Assembly (NCBI GenBank): GCA_964035545.1
Contig: OZ037767.1
Coordinates: 19,422,628-19,486,627 of the forward strand
Origin: Bugula neritina
Lineage: Eukaryota; Animalia; Bryozoa
Direction of reading: 5' to 3'
DNA: 64,000 bases
Shown: piece by piece, positions 2,490 through 29,062 of the stretch
Layout of the letters: each line of letters opens with the position of its first letter
Position numbering within the stretch: position 1 is the first letter of the stretch
Position numbers and translations under genes: made by a program
The notes under the pieces: generated by a model
What the model was told of the DNA's origin: nothing
Database searches by the model: none
The model's input: the letters and a program-made list of their open reading frames with translations, nothing else

Positions 2490-3748
2490 ATGCATATCCA
2501 GCTCTCGGCACTATTCTATTTATCTGTTGTCTGCATTGTGAATGCACAGCATGTAAGTAATTTAAAGCTCTTATAAGATATTATACGGTTGTTATATATA
2601 TATATATATATATATATATATATATATATATATATATATATATATATATATATATATATATATATATATATATATATTCTTCAAATCATCATTATGTTGT
2701 ATTTAGGTTGGTAAGATAAAAATACTCTTCAATTAAGCTTGTAATGTTTTCACTATTTTACAGGATCCTGTGGTAGCCACCCTCCGTGTTCACATCAAGC
2801 ATATATTACCCCAGTTTCTCTCTGAAGTAAGTAAAAGTTTGCTTTAATTATGTGCATGCAGGCTCAAAATCAACTGCTAAATTGAAAACAACAAACTACC
2901 AATTTTGTTGAATAATGTTTCTGATTTGCTAAAATTATAAATCATTTACGTGCTTCAAGCCCTGTGAGCTCTTATTTTTGAATATAGGTTATTTATGCTG
3001 GTAGCTTAGAATGTATTTGGCATAAGTGTTACACTTACACACATAAACATGATACATGCACATATTATACTTACGTAAACAATTTTTTCCTCAGGTTCGA
3101 GATAATTCTGAAACTTTAGAAGTAGAAATAAGAGCAAGTGACTTTAAAGTCAAAGGCAACAACAGATTAGGACAGGGAAGAGTACCTGCTCCCTTGCCTA
3201 ACATGTCAACAACTGTGGGACCTCTAACTGGAGCAGGTGAATGTAGAATATTATTCCCTTCACTGCGTTCCCTTCACTTCAAATGAATCCGTGGATGCTT
3301 GTATCTATGGATCTGTGGTTGTAATTTGCATTAACTTATGCTTGAAGTTTCATTCAAGGCGACCTGTTCCCAAACATCAAATTGCAGGCAAGCAATGGAA
3401 CCACAGTGATAGTCTTAATTAAAGTAAAATAAGCCTTCGAATGACTGAAATTAATGTAACACACATAGATTGGGGCAATTAGTCTATTATAGGTTTTACA
3501 TGTGTGAACTTTGACTACCTGAAACTGTATACTAAATTCACACGCACACACGCACGCGCACGCGCACACACACCTGCACACGCACACACGCACACACTGA
3601 TATAGTTATTTATTGTTATCTATATTATCTATTTATAGCTCACTCTCATATTGGAGGAAACCCACCAGCTGGAAATCCTACTGTCACACATCCGAGTAGA
3701 GAAACTCTGCTGGAACTTTTAAAACGAATACTAGAGTCTCACTGGTGA
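2490..3748 (+). CDS. Secreted precursor gene 1 (divergent family member), ~125 aa, 4 coding exons
   Basis: Exons 2490-2552 (MHIQLSALFYLSVVCIVNAQH, signal peptide), 2764-2826 (DPVVATLRVHIKHILPQFLSE), 3095-3236 (VRDNSETLEVEIRASDFKVK...), 3639-3748 (AHSHIGGNPPAGNPTVTHPSRETLLELLKRILESHW*). All introns GT-AG, phases 0/0/1 as in the paralogues. Confidence 0.85.
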
Positions 3749-5182
3749 AAACGTTATCATTTCACCGTAATAATAATATATTAGGACTTTGATGTAAATA
3801 TCTATGCAATATTTGTATACTTACACTAAGAAATGTTCATAAATCATCCAAAATGTTTGTACATATAGTTGTAATCTTTGGTAACAAAACAAAAGAATGA
3901 ACTCTACTTATAAAATCAATAATAGAAAGTAGTGGGTCTCTTTGATACGTTAGCTATTTATTTATTTGTTATTTATTTATTTATTATATTGTTTGCAAAT
4001 TTTCAATATCAAACTGTATAACTTATGAACAGGTTTTAGTAAAATAATTGTAAACTTTTGATTTTATATGAGGCAACTTTTATTGATGGCAGATCCATTG
4101 TTTCTGCTATAGAACTGGTATTACTTTCACTGCCTCAAATCTCTTTGCTTATTTCATAAAGAAATGAACTCATATATATTATAGTTTACTGATGTCATCA
4201 TACAGCTTTATATGCTAGTGAAATCATTCACTTTACTAATAAATGCTTTAAAATATAACAACTTACTTTAAAAAATAACCTTTGTTCTAAGTAATGAATA
4301 GTGTGTATAATAAAGCTATAGGTGATGTGGAGGTGTAATACTTATAATAGTTTCACTAAGACTCCATGAAGTTACATTGAAGCAAAAAATAACGCTATAA
4401 TAAGCAATTTATTTTTTGCCTAAAGTTTTTGCTCAATTTTTTAAAAATACAAGATATCAGAAAAATCAAATGCAATAATAATAGTGAGTAATGACAATGT
4501 ACAAATTAAAGAATATTCTAAAATCATTTTTTATATAAAGAGCAATTGCTAAATTTAAAATAACTAAATGCATGAAATGCTGCAACGCAGTGACCAAAAG
4601 ACAATGATTTCAACACTAACTGCTTTCATGGTGCAATTATATTAAAAATTGTCTTTACAGTCAAAATAATACTGACCAAGAAAAAACTGATTTAAATATG
4701 TTGGTAACTACTTTTTAGTGGACTGAGGATCGAAGCGATTGGTAACTGTTTTTCGTGCTACAGCTATTAAATTTTGTGAAATTTGTTTTCTATACCCATT
4801 AAAAACATTTATTAGATACATGATCTGTGAAATCTAAAAATAAAAAAGGAAGTGAAATGCATGCTAAACTTTAGACAAAGATCTGGTGTTATTCTGTTTC
4901 AAATTCAACAGATTCAACTCTTTAAACTCACCATCTTATACATTAAAAGGGATCAGCTTTTGTGAAATGATTATAAGATGACGTAACCTAATGGGTGACA
5001 ATTGAAAGTTTGAACTTTGAACTTTTAAACCAGCCCAGTAATTAGACTGTGTGTTGCAGCACCTAAAGATAGCATGGAATGAAAGATAGAAATAATTAGT
5101 GTAAATTGTATAGTAGCAGTAAAGCAAAAGCCTACAAGAAATGTCATCCAAAATCAATTTAGCACATAAAAACTCACACAAG

Positions 5183-25847: not shown

Positions 25848-26400
25848 TATATATATATATATATATATATATATATATATATATATATTTATATGATGTA
25901 TACAATGTGAAGTAAGTAGAAAACAACTGCAGTTCTATTATTAGATGTAATAATTGCAATTATATAGATTCCTTTAACAACATAAATTCGATTTCCAAGA
26001 AATTAGACGGAAATAATAATCTGCTTCATTGGACTTTGATAAAAAAGGCCATTGTATGCAATATGTAAATGTATGAATAGCTGTACAGTCATAATGGGTT
26101 CATTCTGCGTAATATAGCAACCAGTAAAGTATATAGGTCACGCAATACCTGTCTTACTACGGATATTAATCACTTCGGCTCTCATGCATGGTATGCATTG
26201 AAACAACTTCATTATTTTACAGTTTAGTTGCGCTGTACTTGCATGCCACATATTATACTGAAGTGGACTGATTGAATGAATAATTCATCTTTCTTTTAAA
26301 AATGTTGCTATAACTTTAAAGTTTTCTCAGTTTTATAAATGAATGCTTCTCTTCTATAAACTCTCATTTACAAAATAGTAATTTATCATTCAGTTTCAAG

Positions 26401-29062
26401 ATGAAGACTACAATACTCTGGTCCCTCTTACTCCCTTTACATCTTCTAATGTTGTCTTACGTTGGATCACAAGATTCGGTAAGTTGTAGCTCGTTCCTAT
26501 CTTCTATTTTCTACACACTAAGTAGTAAAATCTTGTGTTAACTGGCTTACTGTATTGAACATACATAATTTTTTATCGGTGTCCAGTAAAATTGGCATAG
26601 GTAAAAATGTCACAAATGGAAAAATAGGTAAAATTGGCACATTGGTACTATTGAGGTTTGAGGGTGGGGGTTTGGGTGAGAAAGTTTGTTTGGGGGTTTG
26701 AGTGTGGATGTTTAGGGTGGGGAGTTTGGCTTTAGGGGTTGGAATGGGGAGTTCAGGAATTGGGGGTTTGGGGTTAAATAGATATGGGCAAATATAAAAT
26801 CAGTGTGTCGTTATTACCTGTGTCATTTTTACCTAAAATCATTATTATCAAGTTTTTTGAAGCAAACCCTGCTATCTAGTTGCTTTAGAATTGCATTGCA
26901 TAACTTAAAACAAAGTATAACTAAGTATTAGTGCTGGTTAGTAGGTGGGTAATGGATATATATTTTACAATGAACTATGTAAGCTTAGCTATAATATAAG
27001 CATCTGTATGTTCTCTGTTATATGATGTAGGATCCAGTTGTAGCCACTCTAAACTTGGATATGGGTAAACTTATACCTCAGCTGCTATCCCAGGTAAGCT
27101 CCACAAGTATGCTGTAGTGACAGCATCTTTTGAAAATATGTCAATGATATAATTGAGTTTATAAGTCAAATACGTATCAATAGTACTATACTTATGTAAT
27201 GTCTTTTAAAGAGATGTAAGTGGCGTAGAGAGACAATGTTTTGCTCTTAATGGTGAAAGCTTATTTATAAGTATGATCTGTTTAAAAACCTGTAGTTATA
27301 GTAGGATTATGAGAGAAAGGTTTTATTGTGTAAAGAGTAAGTTAGAGCTATCTTTTGAGTAGTACAGGGAGAATGAAATCATTAAATACAAAAAACATTA
27401 GCTATTTATTTAACTGAATGCTTTACCTAGCTTTTTCTCTGACAATGCTATGATAAGACAACTCTGTGAATTAAATTTAAAATATGTCTATACATCATAC
27501 CGATGTATAGCTCATTGCAAATCTATAGTTGAACCTATAAATTTTGTAAGTTGAAGGGTTCATTATTGTTTGGTTAGCTATAAACTAACTTTGTTATGAG
27601 ATAAAATTAGACACCATGTTATAGCGGATACGCATTGTTCTGAAACTAGCATTATTATGGCAGCTATATTCTAGAAAAGGACGTTACTGCAAAATACACT
27701 ATTTATTAAGAAAAATTAGTTGCTTTTTAATGCAGAATAGAGGTATCCTAATGAATTAATTATTATTAACTATATTATTCCTATGATTAGCTTTCTACAA
27801 TCACAAATAGTAAGTCATATTATAACTGTCAATTAAAGGGTTCGGTTTGAAAAATGATTGCCCTAGCATACTAATTTCGCAGCAATCTCAATACTTATAG
27901 GAGCTTGATACATTATAAAACTTCTATCTGCATGTATAGTAGTTAAGACTACTAATTCTTTGGTTAGAAAAGAAACTGATATACTTTTTGCCAGATGAAA
28001 TGCTTTATTAAAACCACAGATAAAAAGATAGTTGCTTAGAATGGAACATCTAGAGCATATAGAAACTCTAAAATATTGACACCTACAGTCACCCAATTTT
28101 GGCTTTAATAACTGAATTAAAAACATTACAGTTGCATGGAAGGCAAAGCAAAACAACCAATTTGTCTAGCATGTGTTAAAGATGTTACTAAGGATATTTA
28201 AAGTGTTTGTATATACTATTTTAAGCTGGTGTTAGAATCTAACTTATTTTCTAATATGTATTCTTCAAGCCAAACTCTTGAACCTAATAGCTTGGTTTAT
28301 TTCTAAAAAGGTTTTAAAGAACTCCGGGACATTAGAAGTGAAAATTAAAGCCAGTGACTTCCAGGTGAAAGATGAGAATGTCGAAGCTCCAAAACCATCA
28401 CCTCCACCTCCACCACAGCCTAAACCAACCATACCTTCAACTTCTGTACCAAAACCTTTCCCTTCTGTACTAAAACCTTCACCTTCTATACCAAAGCCTC
28501 CACCCTCTGTACTAAAACTTCCACCTTCAGTACCAAAACCGCCACCTCCTGGATTGAAAACTGGAAACCCAAGCAGTACTGGAAGTAAAATATGTAAATA
28601 TTTTGGCTTATGATCTTTCAATTCATTGGTATTAGTAAATTTATTTGTCAGCCATTCCGTTGCTTGAATTTTATACTCATAAACGTTTACTGTTTACTCT
28701 GCATAAAATCAACTATAGAAGGCTAGCGCTGCTGTATAAAATGACAATAACAATACGGTAGTTAGTGAGTTAAATTACATTGCCAGCTAATTAAATATGT
28801 ATCTCTAATTTGAATTTGAAAGCAGTTATAAAGAAAACAGCTAGCTTTACTTCAACTACTAGTAATTAAAACACTCCAATATTAACTCTATTGTTGTAAT
28901 TGTGTTGAAACTAAGAGGCTTTGTTGCTTTAACATGATGCTTCTTGTGTCAACAGCTAACTCATTTGTGGGAAATGCACCAATTGGAAAAAGGAATGAAG
29001 ATGATAAGCAGAAGTTGAAAGAGCTGTTGAGCCGATTGAGCGATGACTTGAATTATTTATGA
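26401..29062 (+). CDS. Secreted precursor gene 5, ~176 aa, Pro-rich heptad linker, predicted ...NSFVGNAPI-amide (G-KR)
   Basis: Exons 26401-26478 (MKTTILWSLLLPLHLLMLSYVGSQDS), 27031-27093 (DPVVATLNLDMGKLIPQLLSQ), 28311-28593 (donor could be 28584), 28956-29062 (NSFVGNAPIGKRNEDDKQKLKELLSRLSDDLNYL*). Confidence 0.88.
26598..26835. repeat. Intronic element: inverted subrepeats around a G-rich (GGGGTTTG-like) core
   Basis: TAGGTAAAAATGTCACA versus TGTGTCATTTTTACCTA (reverse complement); many G-runs at 26655-26775. Confidence 0.55.

Follow-up and report, generated by a model that had tools for sequence, protein, structure and literature searches.

In Bugula neritina, the BnFDSIG-like precursor is of the pedal peptide/orcokinin type, with nine 12-mer peptides lying between KR sites, each carrying an FDxIG signature and ending in ...PIGL (PMC4990251). 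Because of that ending, the FDSIG peptides are not Gly-terminal. The corresponding gene is found in this genome at C3:27770559-27770881, on the same chromosome as the cluster described here and 8.3 Mb from it. The two systems have in common a secreted precursor and a core, [IV]GN.PIG, followed by basic residues; the cluster genes differ in having a single copy, no Asp and no upstream cleavage site. Genome-wide, 11 of the 15 matches to [IV]GNxPIG fall in the cluster plus BnFDSIG-like gene set (2 in controls), and we estimate the resemblance to be too short for significance after multiple comparisons.

Gene models and extent of the family

In the window (the whole 64,000-nucleotide stretch analysed), five genes run on one strand from the gene-1 ATG (2490) to the gene-5 stop (29062), as the preliminary description had proposed. 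All 18 exons have open frames, GT-AG splice sites and polypyrimidine tracts; the five genes are real and intact, with canonical introns. The first exons are signal-peptide-like, a call made from composition only, and have the lengths previously given (63 nt in genes 1-4, 78 nt in gene 5); the last exons are of phase 1. The features are as follows.

2490..2552, + strand: gene 1 exon 1, 63 nt, Met and a hydrophobic run of residues resembling a signal peptide; starts at ATG, frame open, donor GTAAGT; sibling-species protein P0003 begins likewise
2764..2826, + strand: gene 1 exon 2, 63 nt, DPVVATLRVHIKHILPQFLSE; AG/GT bounded, phase 0; aligned with the other exon-2 copies
3095..3236, + strand: gene 1 exon 3, VRDNSETLEVEIRASDFKVK plus short Gly/Pro linker; phase-1 donor; in the exon-3-head alignment
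3639..3748, + strand: gene 1 last exon, AHSHIGGNPPAG-NPTV...ETLLELLKRILESHW-stop; diverged motif; C-terminus shared with sibling orthologue P0003
7599..7661, + strand: gene 2 exon 1, 63 nt, signal-peptide-like; orthologue P0002
7769..7831, + strand: gene 2 exon 2, DPVVATLKLDIEKLTPLFLSQ; dN 0.02, dS 0.33 versus sibling species
8030..8258, + strand: gene 2 exon 3, LLENSTTLEVEIRVSDFQLK plus Pro/Ala/Ser/Thr linker; phase-1 donor; start fixed by annotated orthologue P0002
8496..8587, + strand: gene 2 last exon, (S)NSFVGNPPIG-RRRR-SLKSNKKLKNFFAGN-stop
14667..14729, + strand: gene 3 exon 1, MNVKWLLCFIFFSFCYANLKN; in the transcript this exon reaches back to about 14318, adding 350 nt or more of 5' UTR
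15096..15324, + strand: gene 3 exon 2, Lys/Gln/Ser-rich body, degenerate FLATRIKASNAKQ; not preceded by a DPVVATL exon; junctions agree with transcript L068
15688..15731, + strand: gene 3 last exon, (N)STAKSFVGNPPIG-stop; P0001 peptide and stop identical
22301..22363, + strand: gene 4 exon 1, copy of that of gene 3
22750..22978, + strand: gene 4 exon 2; junctions agree with transcript L068
23342..23385, + strand: gene 4 last exon, (N)STAKSFVGNPPIG-stop
26401..26478, + strand: gene 5 exon 1, 78 nt, MKTTILWSLLLPLHLLMLSYVGSQDS
27031..27093, + strand: gene 5 exon 2, DPVVATLNLDMGKLIPQLLSQ; aligned with the other exon-2 copies
28311..28584, + strand: gene 5 exon 3, VLKNSGTLEVKIKASDFQVK plus Pro/Lys-rich body; 21-nt tandem repeat x5.7
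28956..29062, + strand: gene 5 last exon, (T)NSFVGNAPIG-KR-NEDDKQKLKELLSRLSDDLNYL-stop
11027..26000, unstranded: segment of about 7.65 kb in two tandem copies (about 11.0-18.4 kb and 18.5-26.0 kb) holding genes 3 and 4; direct-repeat families spaced 7.5-7.9 kb, 90-98% identity

The exon plan earlier ascribed to all five genes, a 63-nt DPVVATL exon followed by one starting LEV.I(R/K).SDF, holds for genes 1, 2 and 5 and not for genes 3 and 4, which have three exons rather than four, lack the DPVVATL exon, and open their body exon with the degenerate VSKQPRFLATRIKASNAKQ, a faint echo of LEV.I(R/K).SDF. These two genes are not independent, since both lie within the 7.65-kb tandem duplication, whose copies are 90-98% identical. 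The endings were read correctly: SNSFVGNPPIG-RRRR in gene 2, KSFVGNPPIG-stop in genes 3 and 4, and NSFVGNAPIG-KR in gene 5, all on the phase-1 last exon. As a cluster-wide ending, the motif does not extend to gene 1, where AHSHIGGNPPAG is followed by NPTV... and no basic site.

Nor do the five genes make up the whole cluster, as had been supposed. Two further gene-2-type genes with intact frames and canonical splice sites lie 31-35 kb upstream (C3:19386837-19387735 and C3:19391209-19392154), and a second cluster 3.1 Mb away (C3:22.526-22.538 Mb) holds at least four paralogues with the same N-terminal module. The bodies of the latter are mucin-like or Tyr-rich repeats, TTTRPSPSPW or PRYYTTA, built from a 48-nt unit x6.3 (TTTRPSPSPWVPHHFS) and a 24-nt unit (PRYYTTA) respectively, and SFVGNPPIG is absent from them; shared module, repeat bodies and missing motif together point to an ancestry in extracellular material.

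Of all parts of the family, the N-terminal module, and not the C-terminal motif, is the most widely shared. The module comprises about 40 residues on two phase-0 exons (DPVVATL.LD..KL.P and T[LI]EV.I[RK].SDF..K); genes 3 and 4 lack it or have it in degenerate form. DPVVATL, immediately after the signal peptide, is invariant in 8/8 exon-2 copies, and the 11 exon-3 heads all keep the I, the S and an identical register. Among the old paralogues, silent sites in exon 2 and the exon-3 head are saturated (pS 0.65-1.0) and the amino acids are conserved. The bodies are wholly different between paralogues: Pro/Ala-rich, composed of PKP repeats, or Lys/Gln/Ser-rich. The five cluster proteins, of 111-173 aa, are cysteine-free, basic (pI 8.5-11.2) and predicted to be disordered, with a mean AlphaFold2 pLDDT of 50-52 and no confident fold. 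A Pfam search gave no domain match, and phmmer with P0002 against 1.84 billion representatives returned only Bugula proteins and low-complexity noise; on these searches the family is restricted to Bugula, with no relatives found outside it. The SFVGN(P/A)PIG motif was not found in the literature searched. The proteins are probably secreted and are functionally uncharacterised, in keeping with their first description as unrecognised secreted precursors.

Expression, orthologues and selection

A transcript from a cryptic sibling species of B. neritina, Logan contig L068 (SRR4020085), aligns to the window in three blocks that are exactly exons 1, 2 and 3 of genes 3/4. The transcript is spliced: it skips an intron of 538 nt that the sibling genome contig L069 contains, and its product, P0001, terminates in KSFVGNPPIG-stop, as do genes 3 and 4. 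The sibling species transcribes the gene-3/4 type and splices it in agreement with the model; the RNA evidence, and with it the confirmation of the earlier junctions, covers this type only.

Sibling orthologues are intact for genes 1, 2 and 3/4, in assembly GCA_010799875.2 or in the transcript. P0002 (KAF6034452.1, EB796_007243) is the gene-2 orthologue, with the same four-part architecture and a body exon 86% identical, and carries SNSFVGNAPIGRRRR; P0003 (KAF6034451.1, EB796_007242, GCA_010799875.2) is that of gene 1. An orthologue of gene 5 was looked for in the sibling species and not found. The sibling loci are collinear in gene order and spacing, and nucleotide identity per aligned block is 68-84% (78-84% in long blocks, non-coding ones included). 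EB796_007243, EB796_007242, EB796_007619 and EB796_003390 (GCA_010799875.2), all orthologues or co-family members, are annotated "hypothetical protein"; being unnamed and unstudied, they lend no function to the family.

The dN/dS ratio was measured between genes 2, 3 and 4 and their sibling counterparts and between gene 3 and gene 4, and is below 1 in every case: 0.25-0.52 for the sibling comparisons (gene 2 about 0.31) and 0.14 for gene 3 versus gene 4. In genes 3 and 4 versus the sibling, dN is 0 in the signal exon and last exon, with values of 0.3-0.7 and a 13-aa indel in the body.

The C-terminal motif and its putative processing

The 216-Mb genome contains 5 matches to the degenerate DNA pattern for FVGN(P/A)PIG, each of them in this cluster, and the reversed control has 0; the SFVGN(P/A)PIG motif is far beyond chance. 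On a short phase-1 last exon, (N/K)SFVGN(P/A)PIG is confined to this cluster, single-copy in each precursor, and its roughly 30 nt have flanks that cannot be aligned between gene lineages. What comes after the conserved Gly differs: RRRR in gene 2 and both upstream copies, KR in gene 5, and a stop codon in genes 3 and 4. The earlier observation of Gly before basic residues or a stop is upheld in three of the four old lineages, and those sibling orthologues that were found have the same state as their counterparts here (stop in P0001, RRRR in P0002). The last exon of gene 1 has a diverged HIGGNPPAG, and GNPPAG lacks a basic site or stop in the orthologue also; this missing processing signal counts against amidation. 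Silent sites within the motif are unusually conserved among old paralogues (pS 0.14-0.27, versus 0.65-1.0 for exon 2 and the head of exon 3), so that short-tract gene conversion or nucleotide-level constraint, rather than constraint on the peptide, could account for some of the conservation. The motif's nucleotide sequence contains a palindrome, CCAATTGG.

Upstream of the motif, the cluster proteins have no conserved mono- or dibasic site: the basic sites present are scattered, the copy at C3:19387 kb having RSLR, genes 3 and 4 a KR at residue 62, and P0001 a KK. This is atypical of bioactive amidated peptides and weighs against the amidation reading too. It also tells against the short (P/A)PI-amide peptide first suggested: at most, a polypeptide of about 90-125 residues with an amidated end would be made, not a small neuropeptide. 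The original observation is partly confirmed and its interpretation partly supported.

Our preferred explanation, held tentatively at a little under an even chance, is a Bugula-restricted multigene family of small disordered secreted proteins with a C-terminal processing cassette and an amidated whole polypeptide, which may serve either as a signal (hormone or pheromone) or as extracellular material. A signal peptide, N-terminal module and variable body would precede the last exon, the cassette itself. Furin or a prohormone convertase would cut at RRRR/KR and a carboxypeptidase trim to ...PPIG-COOH, the end that the stop codon by itself would yield in genes 3 and 4. This end would be a good substrate for peptidylglycine alpha-amidating monooxygenase (PAM), giving ...VGN(P/A)PI-NH2; copper type II monooxygenase (PF01082) loci are present in the genome. 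The amidated product would be the entire polypeptide, probably glycosylated, and its invariant C-terminus the partner-binding end. Amidation is plausible given a Gly before RRRR, KR or stop that is conserved between sibling species, and three such endings are the outcome expected if selection favours a C-terminal Gly left exposed as the substrate of PAM.

Alternative readings and known systems

A serious rival, possible though somewhat doubtful, is that these are extracellular structural or material proteins (a mucin-like coat, a cuticle (ectocyst) matrix, or a larval or adult adhesive), in which the N-terminal module would assemble or anchor, the low-complexity body would be the working part, and SFVGNPPIG with RRRR/KR would either bind a partner or let furin remove a C-terminal propeptide, amidation being incidental or absent. 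The tandem-repeat bodies (21-nt x5.7 in gene 5; 48-nt x6.3 and 24-nt in the second cluster) speak for it, as do five cysteine-free, basic (pI 8.5-11.2), predicted disordered proteins without a cleavage site upstream of the motif, and the closest feature look-alikes in the ESM Atlas are disordered secreted proteins, every score being below 0.9 and the matches leads only. Tandem duplication and fast-diverging bodies are, moreover, typical of extracellular-material families. However, the cluster bodies are short (about 27-70 aa) and have no common composition; with only the termini invariant, this is the pattern of a spacer, not of a working part. Three routes to an ending at Gly, of which the RRRR and stop types are kept in the sibling, also lack an obvious reason.

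That the genes encode classical neuropeptide or peptide-hormone precursors, from which cuts on both sides free a short diffusible ...SFVGN(P/A)PI-amide, we consider unlikely. Signal peptide, variable spacer, short conserved C-terminal motif and Gly before basic residues or stop would fit, some copies have the upstream basic sites listed above, and the motif resembles the FDSIG-type peptides of B. neritina, SFDSIGNGPIGLKR (PMC4990251); yet those sites shift between paralogues and even orthologues, each precursor has one motif copy, gene 1 misses the processing signal, and the second-cluster paralogues lack the motif. It is quite improbable that the N-terminal module of about 40 residues is the functional product, freed at the conserved Lys ending ...SDF.xK, and the remainder a disposable spacer and tail. 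A basic residue at -8 from this Lys fits the monobasic rule, the module is common to both clusters, and its invariance (8/8 exon-2 copies; I, S and register in 11/11 exon-3 heads) persists despite saturated silent sites; but genes 3 and 4, in which exon 2 is gone and the head of exon 3 has decayed, are still expressed, intact and under purifying selection, and the Lys cleavage is pure inference. Non-functionality, through decaying duplicates or chance open frames, is very remote and already largely refuted: genes 1, 2 and 5 are without direct RNA evidence in this genome, but frames are intact and splice sites canonical in five genes plus two further copies, the gene-3/4 type is spliced, genes 1, 2 and 3/4 have intact orthologues, and dN/dS is 0.25-0.52 (genes 2, 3, 4) and 0.14 (gene 3 versus 4).

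Vertebrate SCPP genes and dipteran salivary glue genes, like the Bugula family, form tandem clusters in which a small exon encodes the signal peptide, short segments at the termini are conserved, and the disordered bodies are hypervariable and made of repeats. To our knowledge, they have neither a sequence relationship to the Bugula family nor an invariant Gly-terminal C-terminal cassette. With amidated-peptide precursors (prohormone convertase/carboxypeptidase/PAM) the family shares the signal peptide, the Gly followed by RRRR, KR or stop, the conserved C-terminal motif and the variable spacer; unlike them, it has no conserved upstream cleavage site, one member without the signal after Gly, and a predicted product of about 90-125 residues. 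The cluster proteins appear unlike ordinary neuropeptide precursors, and the Gly-terminal placement of the tag that most of them carry would fit amidation.

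Gene models, transcription and orthology

All five genes of the cluster can be read from the DNA as complete models whose introns are GT-AG and have polypyrimidine tracts, in a window of 31% G+C (C3:19422628-19486627 of assembly G000, 216,009,554 bases; the published Bugula neritina assembly has 216.00 Mb on 9 chromosomes, PMC11480708). A six-frame motif scan of the window places SFVGN(P/A)PIG at 8501, 15702, 23356, and 28961, DPVVATL at 2764, 7769, and 27031, and LEV.I[RK].SDF at 3116, 8051, and 28332. Exons were joined in scripts for frame checks, composition, and dN/dS; search queries were single exons or uninterrupted open frames, and full-length work was done on the database proteins P0001-P0007.

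Gene models of the cluster (window coordinates, all on the same strand, exons separated by slashes)
Gene 1: 2490-2552 / 2764-2826 / 3095-3236 / 3639-3748; 125 aa
Gene 2: 7599-7661 / 7769-7831 / 8030-8258 / 8496-8587; 148 aa
Gene 3: 14667-14729 / 15096-15324 / 15688-15731; 111 aa
Gene 4: 22301-22363 / 22750-22978 / 23342-23385; 111 aa
Gene 5: 26401-26478 / 27031-27093 / 28311-28584 / 28956-29062; 173 aa

These models bear out the first exons of 63 nt and 78 nt of the preliminary description, as well as its phase-1 last exon with three C-terminal variants (RRRR, KR, and stop). The exon plan that it took to be shared by all five genes holds for three: the 63-nt DPVVATL exon 2 and the exon starting with LEV.I.SDF are found in genes 1, 2, and 5; in genes 3 and 4 the DPVVATL exon is missing and the body exon starts VSKQPRFLATRIKASNAKQ. 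A weak DAVVCTL match at 12047 and 19899 was considered as the corresponding exon of genes 3 and 4 and rejected, as it is not an exon. The last exon of gene 1 reads AHSHIGGNPPAG-NPTV...LLELLKRILESHW, and the Gly is followed by no basic site.

Genes 3 and 4 are copies carried by a 7.65-kb tandem duplication whose two units are 90-98% identical, the ~7.65-kb segment lying twice in tandem at window 11027-26000. The duplication is younger than the split from the sibling species, since identity is ~80% between species and ~95% between copies. Close by, a tandem array (window 10163-10643; 11-nt period, ~43 units) lies within a stretch of strong G-over-C skew (0.23 in window 10001-12000), and a 275-nt direct repeat (family D18) is present at 25425-25847. 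Rfam at gathering thresholds returned no family anywhere in the window, including the hammerhead ribozyme of a retrozyme-like repeat suggested at 25425-25847.

Assembly GCA_010799875.2 is collinear with the window, at 68-84% identity per aligned block and 78-84% in long blocks; it is taken to represent a sibling species in the known cryptic complex (PMC11480708), and as such provides a useful outgroup. The body exon of gene 3 matched P0001, a protein of 97 aa whose source is the Logan transcript contig SRR4020085_95186 (L068). Against the window, this contig gives exactly three aligned blocks (exon 1 with 5' UTR; body exon; last exon with ~620 nt of 3' UTR), and the block breaks coincide with the modelled junctions of genes 3 and 4. 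With the sibling genome contig L069 it shares 98-99.5% identity, skipping a 538-nt intron there, and it is thus spliced RNA of the sibling species. A spliced transcript, of the kind proposed as a check on the cluster, therefore supports the junctions of the gene-3/4 type from the sibling species, and the direct joining of exon 1 to the body exon confirms the absence of the DPVVATL exon. P0001 shares its signal exon with gene 3 and ends identically, in NSTAKSFVGNPPIG-stop; its body is 62% identical, and 13 aa are deleted from it.

The open frame of the gene 2 body exon matched P0002 (KAF6034452.1, “hypothetical protein EB796_007243”), which has the four-part architecture and SNSFVGNAPIGRRRR, is 86% identical over that exon, shares the exon junctions, and lies in a collinear locus. 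A phmmer search with P0002 also brought up P0003, the gene-1 orthologue with C-terminus AHSHIGGNPPAGDPTV..., and P0006 from the second cluster; two other matches, P0004 and P0005, are noise from low complexity or repeats. By identity and conserved gene order, the genes can be placed with the Bugula “hypothetical protein” family EB796_007242/007243.

Gene 2 differs from its orthologue by dN 0.064 and dS 0.203, with dN 0.02 in exon 2 alone, and dN 0.09 and dS 0.82 in the tail after RRRR. Compared with the P0001 coding sequence, genes 3 and 4 show no protein-changing substitution in either the signal or the last exon (dN = 0), and their bodies have dN/dS of 0.3-0.7; between genes 3 and 4, dN/dS is 0.14. 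The old paralogues (genes 1, 2, and 5) have reached saturation at the silent sites of exon 2 and the exon-3 head, with pS 0.65-1.0, and keep the amino acids.

A family of disordered secreted proteins

The family is larger than the five genes initially noted. Degenerate DNA patterns searched over the whole genome gave five matches to FVGN(P/A)PIG, all in this cluster (reversed control: 0), nine occurrences of DPVVATL, and nine of EV.I[RK].SD[FC] in family genes. Two further intact genes of the gene-2 type lie 31-35 kb upstream of the cluster:

C3:19386837-19387735, upstream gene-2-type copy, KSFVGNPPIGRRRR
C3:19391209-19392154, upstream gene-2-type copy, NSFSGNPPIGRRRR

A second cluster at C3:22.526-22.538 Mb (C3:22526000-22538000; regions L016 and L020) holds at least four paralogues on both strands, which share the 63-nt exon 2 and the exon-3 head in identical register. 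Their bodies are either mucin-like TTTRPSPSPWVPHHFS (48-nt repeat, 6.3 copies) or made of Tyr-rich PRYYTTA (24-nt repeat), the latter adhesive- or cuticle-like in composition, and SFVGNPPIG was not found in these genes. A dead DPVVATL pseudo-exon lies within this cluster on the minus strand (L020:171-233).

Two isolated look-alike endings occur elsewhere: ...TSFTGNAPIGRR-stop at C5:1114516 (region L044; SFTGNAPIGRR-stop, behind a phase-1-compatible acceptor) and ...VGNAPIG-stop at C6:1205085 (L048). Neither has recognisable family exons within 6 kb upstream, and they may be either orphan last exons or chance. GNPPAG matches were discarded as family motifs, being out of frame, in two regions (L047 and L054) inside a retroelement and in a third (L040) in a MAM-like exon.

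Every exon 1 is signal-peptide-like as judged by composition: Met, one or two charged residues, a hydrophobic run of 12-15, and small residues. The five proteins are cysteine-free and basic (pI 8.5-11.2). AlphaFold2 reached pLDDT 50-52 both on a single sequence and on a family alignment of five rows, and predicted no confident fold; a short helix following DPVVATL and another in the tail are the most that it shows. For the ESM Atlas model, pLDDT is 0.48; its best feature match (0.87) and structure matches (TM ≤ 0.30) are leads only.

A phmmer search of 1.84 billion representative proteins with P0002 found no homologues beyond Bugula, and Pfam gave no domain above noise. Of the word-index searches, gene 3 led to P0001 and gene 2 to P0002, and the gene 5 body-exon frame had no match. 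A search of a literature library for the motif strings and protein accessions found no paper. The search for an already described relative, a hit to which would have spoken against the family's novelty, returned Bugula proteins only apart from noise. The family is genuine and confined to Bugula, and it encodes disordered secreted proteins.

The C-terminal cassette and possible roles

When nine last exons with their flanks (seven cluster genes and two sibling orthologues) are aligned as DNA, a single block, the ~30 nt coding for S-F-V-G-N-P-P-I-G, is common to all lineages; between lineages, neither introns nor bodies nor 3' ends can be aligned. After the Gly comes RRRR in gene 2 and the two upstream copies, KR in gene 5, and a stop in genes 3 and 4, and the sibling species keeps both the stop (P0001) and the RRRR state (P0002). 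Gene 1 has Asn after the Gly (G-N) and no amidation-type signal. The Gly-basic amidation signal attributed to the cluster therefore stands for genes 2-5 (GRRRR, GKR, and G-stop), conserved in P0001 and P0002, and falls for gene 1.

Once furin or a prohormone convertase has cut and a carboxypeptidase has trimmed the new end, Gly is left at the C-terminus, and PAM turns X-Gly into X-amide. In this family, cleavage at RRRR or KR and trimming would expose the Gly for amidation by PAM, and cleavage after the Gly would release the C-terminal tails SLKSNKKLKNFFAGN and NEDDKQ.... Amidation is the best single reason for the three ways in which the lineages end at Gly, and the cassette plausibly marks amidation in atypical precursors. 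A GPI-anchor signal was rejected, since the tails are hydrophilic or absent. PF01082 monooxygenase loci are present in the genome; exons that match this copper type II monooxygenase domain (PHM/DBH family) occur in several tandem groups, at C4:5716422-5730349, C9:5516342-5544697, and C3:32009414-32022322, which suggests an expanded enzyme set.

A short (P/A)PI-amide peptide is not predicted: neither paralogues nor orthologues have a positionally conserved mono- or dibasic site upstream of the motif from which one could be released. Genes 3 and 4 carry a KR at residue 62, but within the stretch deleted in P0001, whose own KK lies elsewhere; RSLR precedes the motif in a single upstream copy, and genes 2 and 5 have no upstream basic site. 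The predicted product is thus the whole post-signal polypeptide.

The motif is also unusual at silent sites, with pS of 0.14-0.27 among old paralogues vs 0.65-1.0 where exon 2 and the exon-3 head of these genes are compared, and its DNA contains the perfect palindrome CCAATTGG. Short-tract gene conversion or constraint on the nucleotide sequence may contribute to this low divergence, an oddity that cuts across all the readings below.

Motif codons used in the pS comparison (window)
8498-8524
15699-15725
23353-23379
28958-28984

In the most far-reaching reading, these would be bryozoan-specific secreted signalling proteins of ~90-125 residues, with the amidated ...SFVGN(P/A)PI-NH2, exposed via RRRR, KR, or stop, as their sole invariant. 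They would serve as hormones or water-borne cues, with colony coordination and the settlement of larvae as examples, and their C-terminal exon, perhaps derived from the pedal-peptide/orcokinin (FDSIG) gene of this chromosome, may have been joined to the scaffold of a matrix protein. In this full form it is speculative and rather unlikely. A serious rival to an amidated whole polypeptide, and a real possibility, is that the proteins are structural, matrix, or adhesive and that the cassette serves as a propeptide or binding site, since the N-terminal module is the family-wide constant and the second cluster links it to repeat bodies typical of extracellular materials. The mucin-like combination of a signal peptide and a Pro/Thr/Ser-rich tandem-repeat body gives a mixed picture for the family: it is seen in gene 5 and the second cluster, weakly in gene 2, no repeat being found, and not in genes 3 and 4 (Lys/Gln/Ser-rich, without repeat).

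A classical short neuropeptide, set beside the missing upstream site, is quite unlikely. That an N-terminal peptide is the product, with the constant module as its source, we regard as very unlikely, and that these are not genes at all, given the spliced transcript, is scarcely credible.

Bryozoan peptide signalling is almost unexplored; the 11 precursors in the sole in-silico survey of B. neritina do not include the five family genes. An expressed, group-restricted family whose only invariant piece is a Gly-terminal cassette offers a cheap and concrete target for peptidomics and in situ studies; the animal is a major fouling organism, and the settlement of its larvae has applied interest. Should the proteins prove to be material, they would still be a clear example of orphan secreted-family diversification, with conserved ends, freely replaced bodies, exon loss, and a stop codon moved onto the processing site. 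Either way, this would be an incremental addition and no new principle.

Comparison with known peptide families

A hormone of the CRF/DH44/ELH type (PxxxxLxLD start, Ile-amide end) was considered and rejected: judged by the Pfam CRF profile and a helical peptide of ~40 aa, there is no profile support, and the sequence is broken up by a Pro-rich linker of 50-70 aa. Neither P0002 nor P0001 has a hormone-family Pfam match at E ≤ 10.

The FDSIG peptides of B. neritina, of the pedal peptide/orcokinin type, come closest. The genome holds an FDSIG-like precursor gene at C3:27770559-27770881 (L024), with nine 14-aa units in tandem (42-nt period), bounded by KR sites, which encodes the published peptides SFDSIGNGPIGLKR and SFGGIGGRPASYKR (PMC4990251). 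Whereas this gene has nine peptide copies between dibasic sites, the genes described here have one motif each; they lack the (F/L)DxIG signature, the motif being NSFVGN with no Asp, and have none of the upstream cleavage sites of FDSIG precursors. Membership was rejected on these three points, and as the defining features fail, the resemblance is kept as a lead. It is real all the same: FDSIG (SFDSIGNGPIGLKR) and family motifs have the common core [IV]GN.PIG, followed by basic residues, and genome-wide this core is almost confined to the FDSIG gene and the present family (11 of 15 matches, vs 2 for controls).
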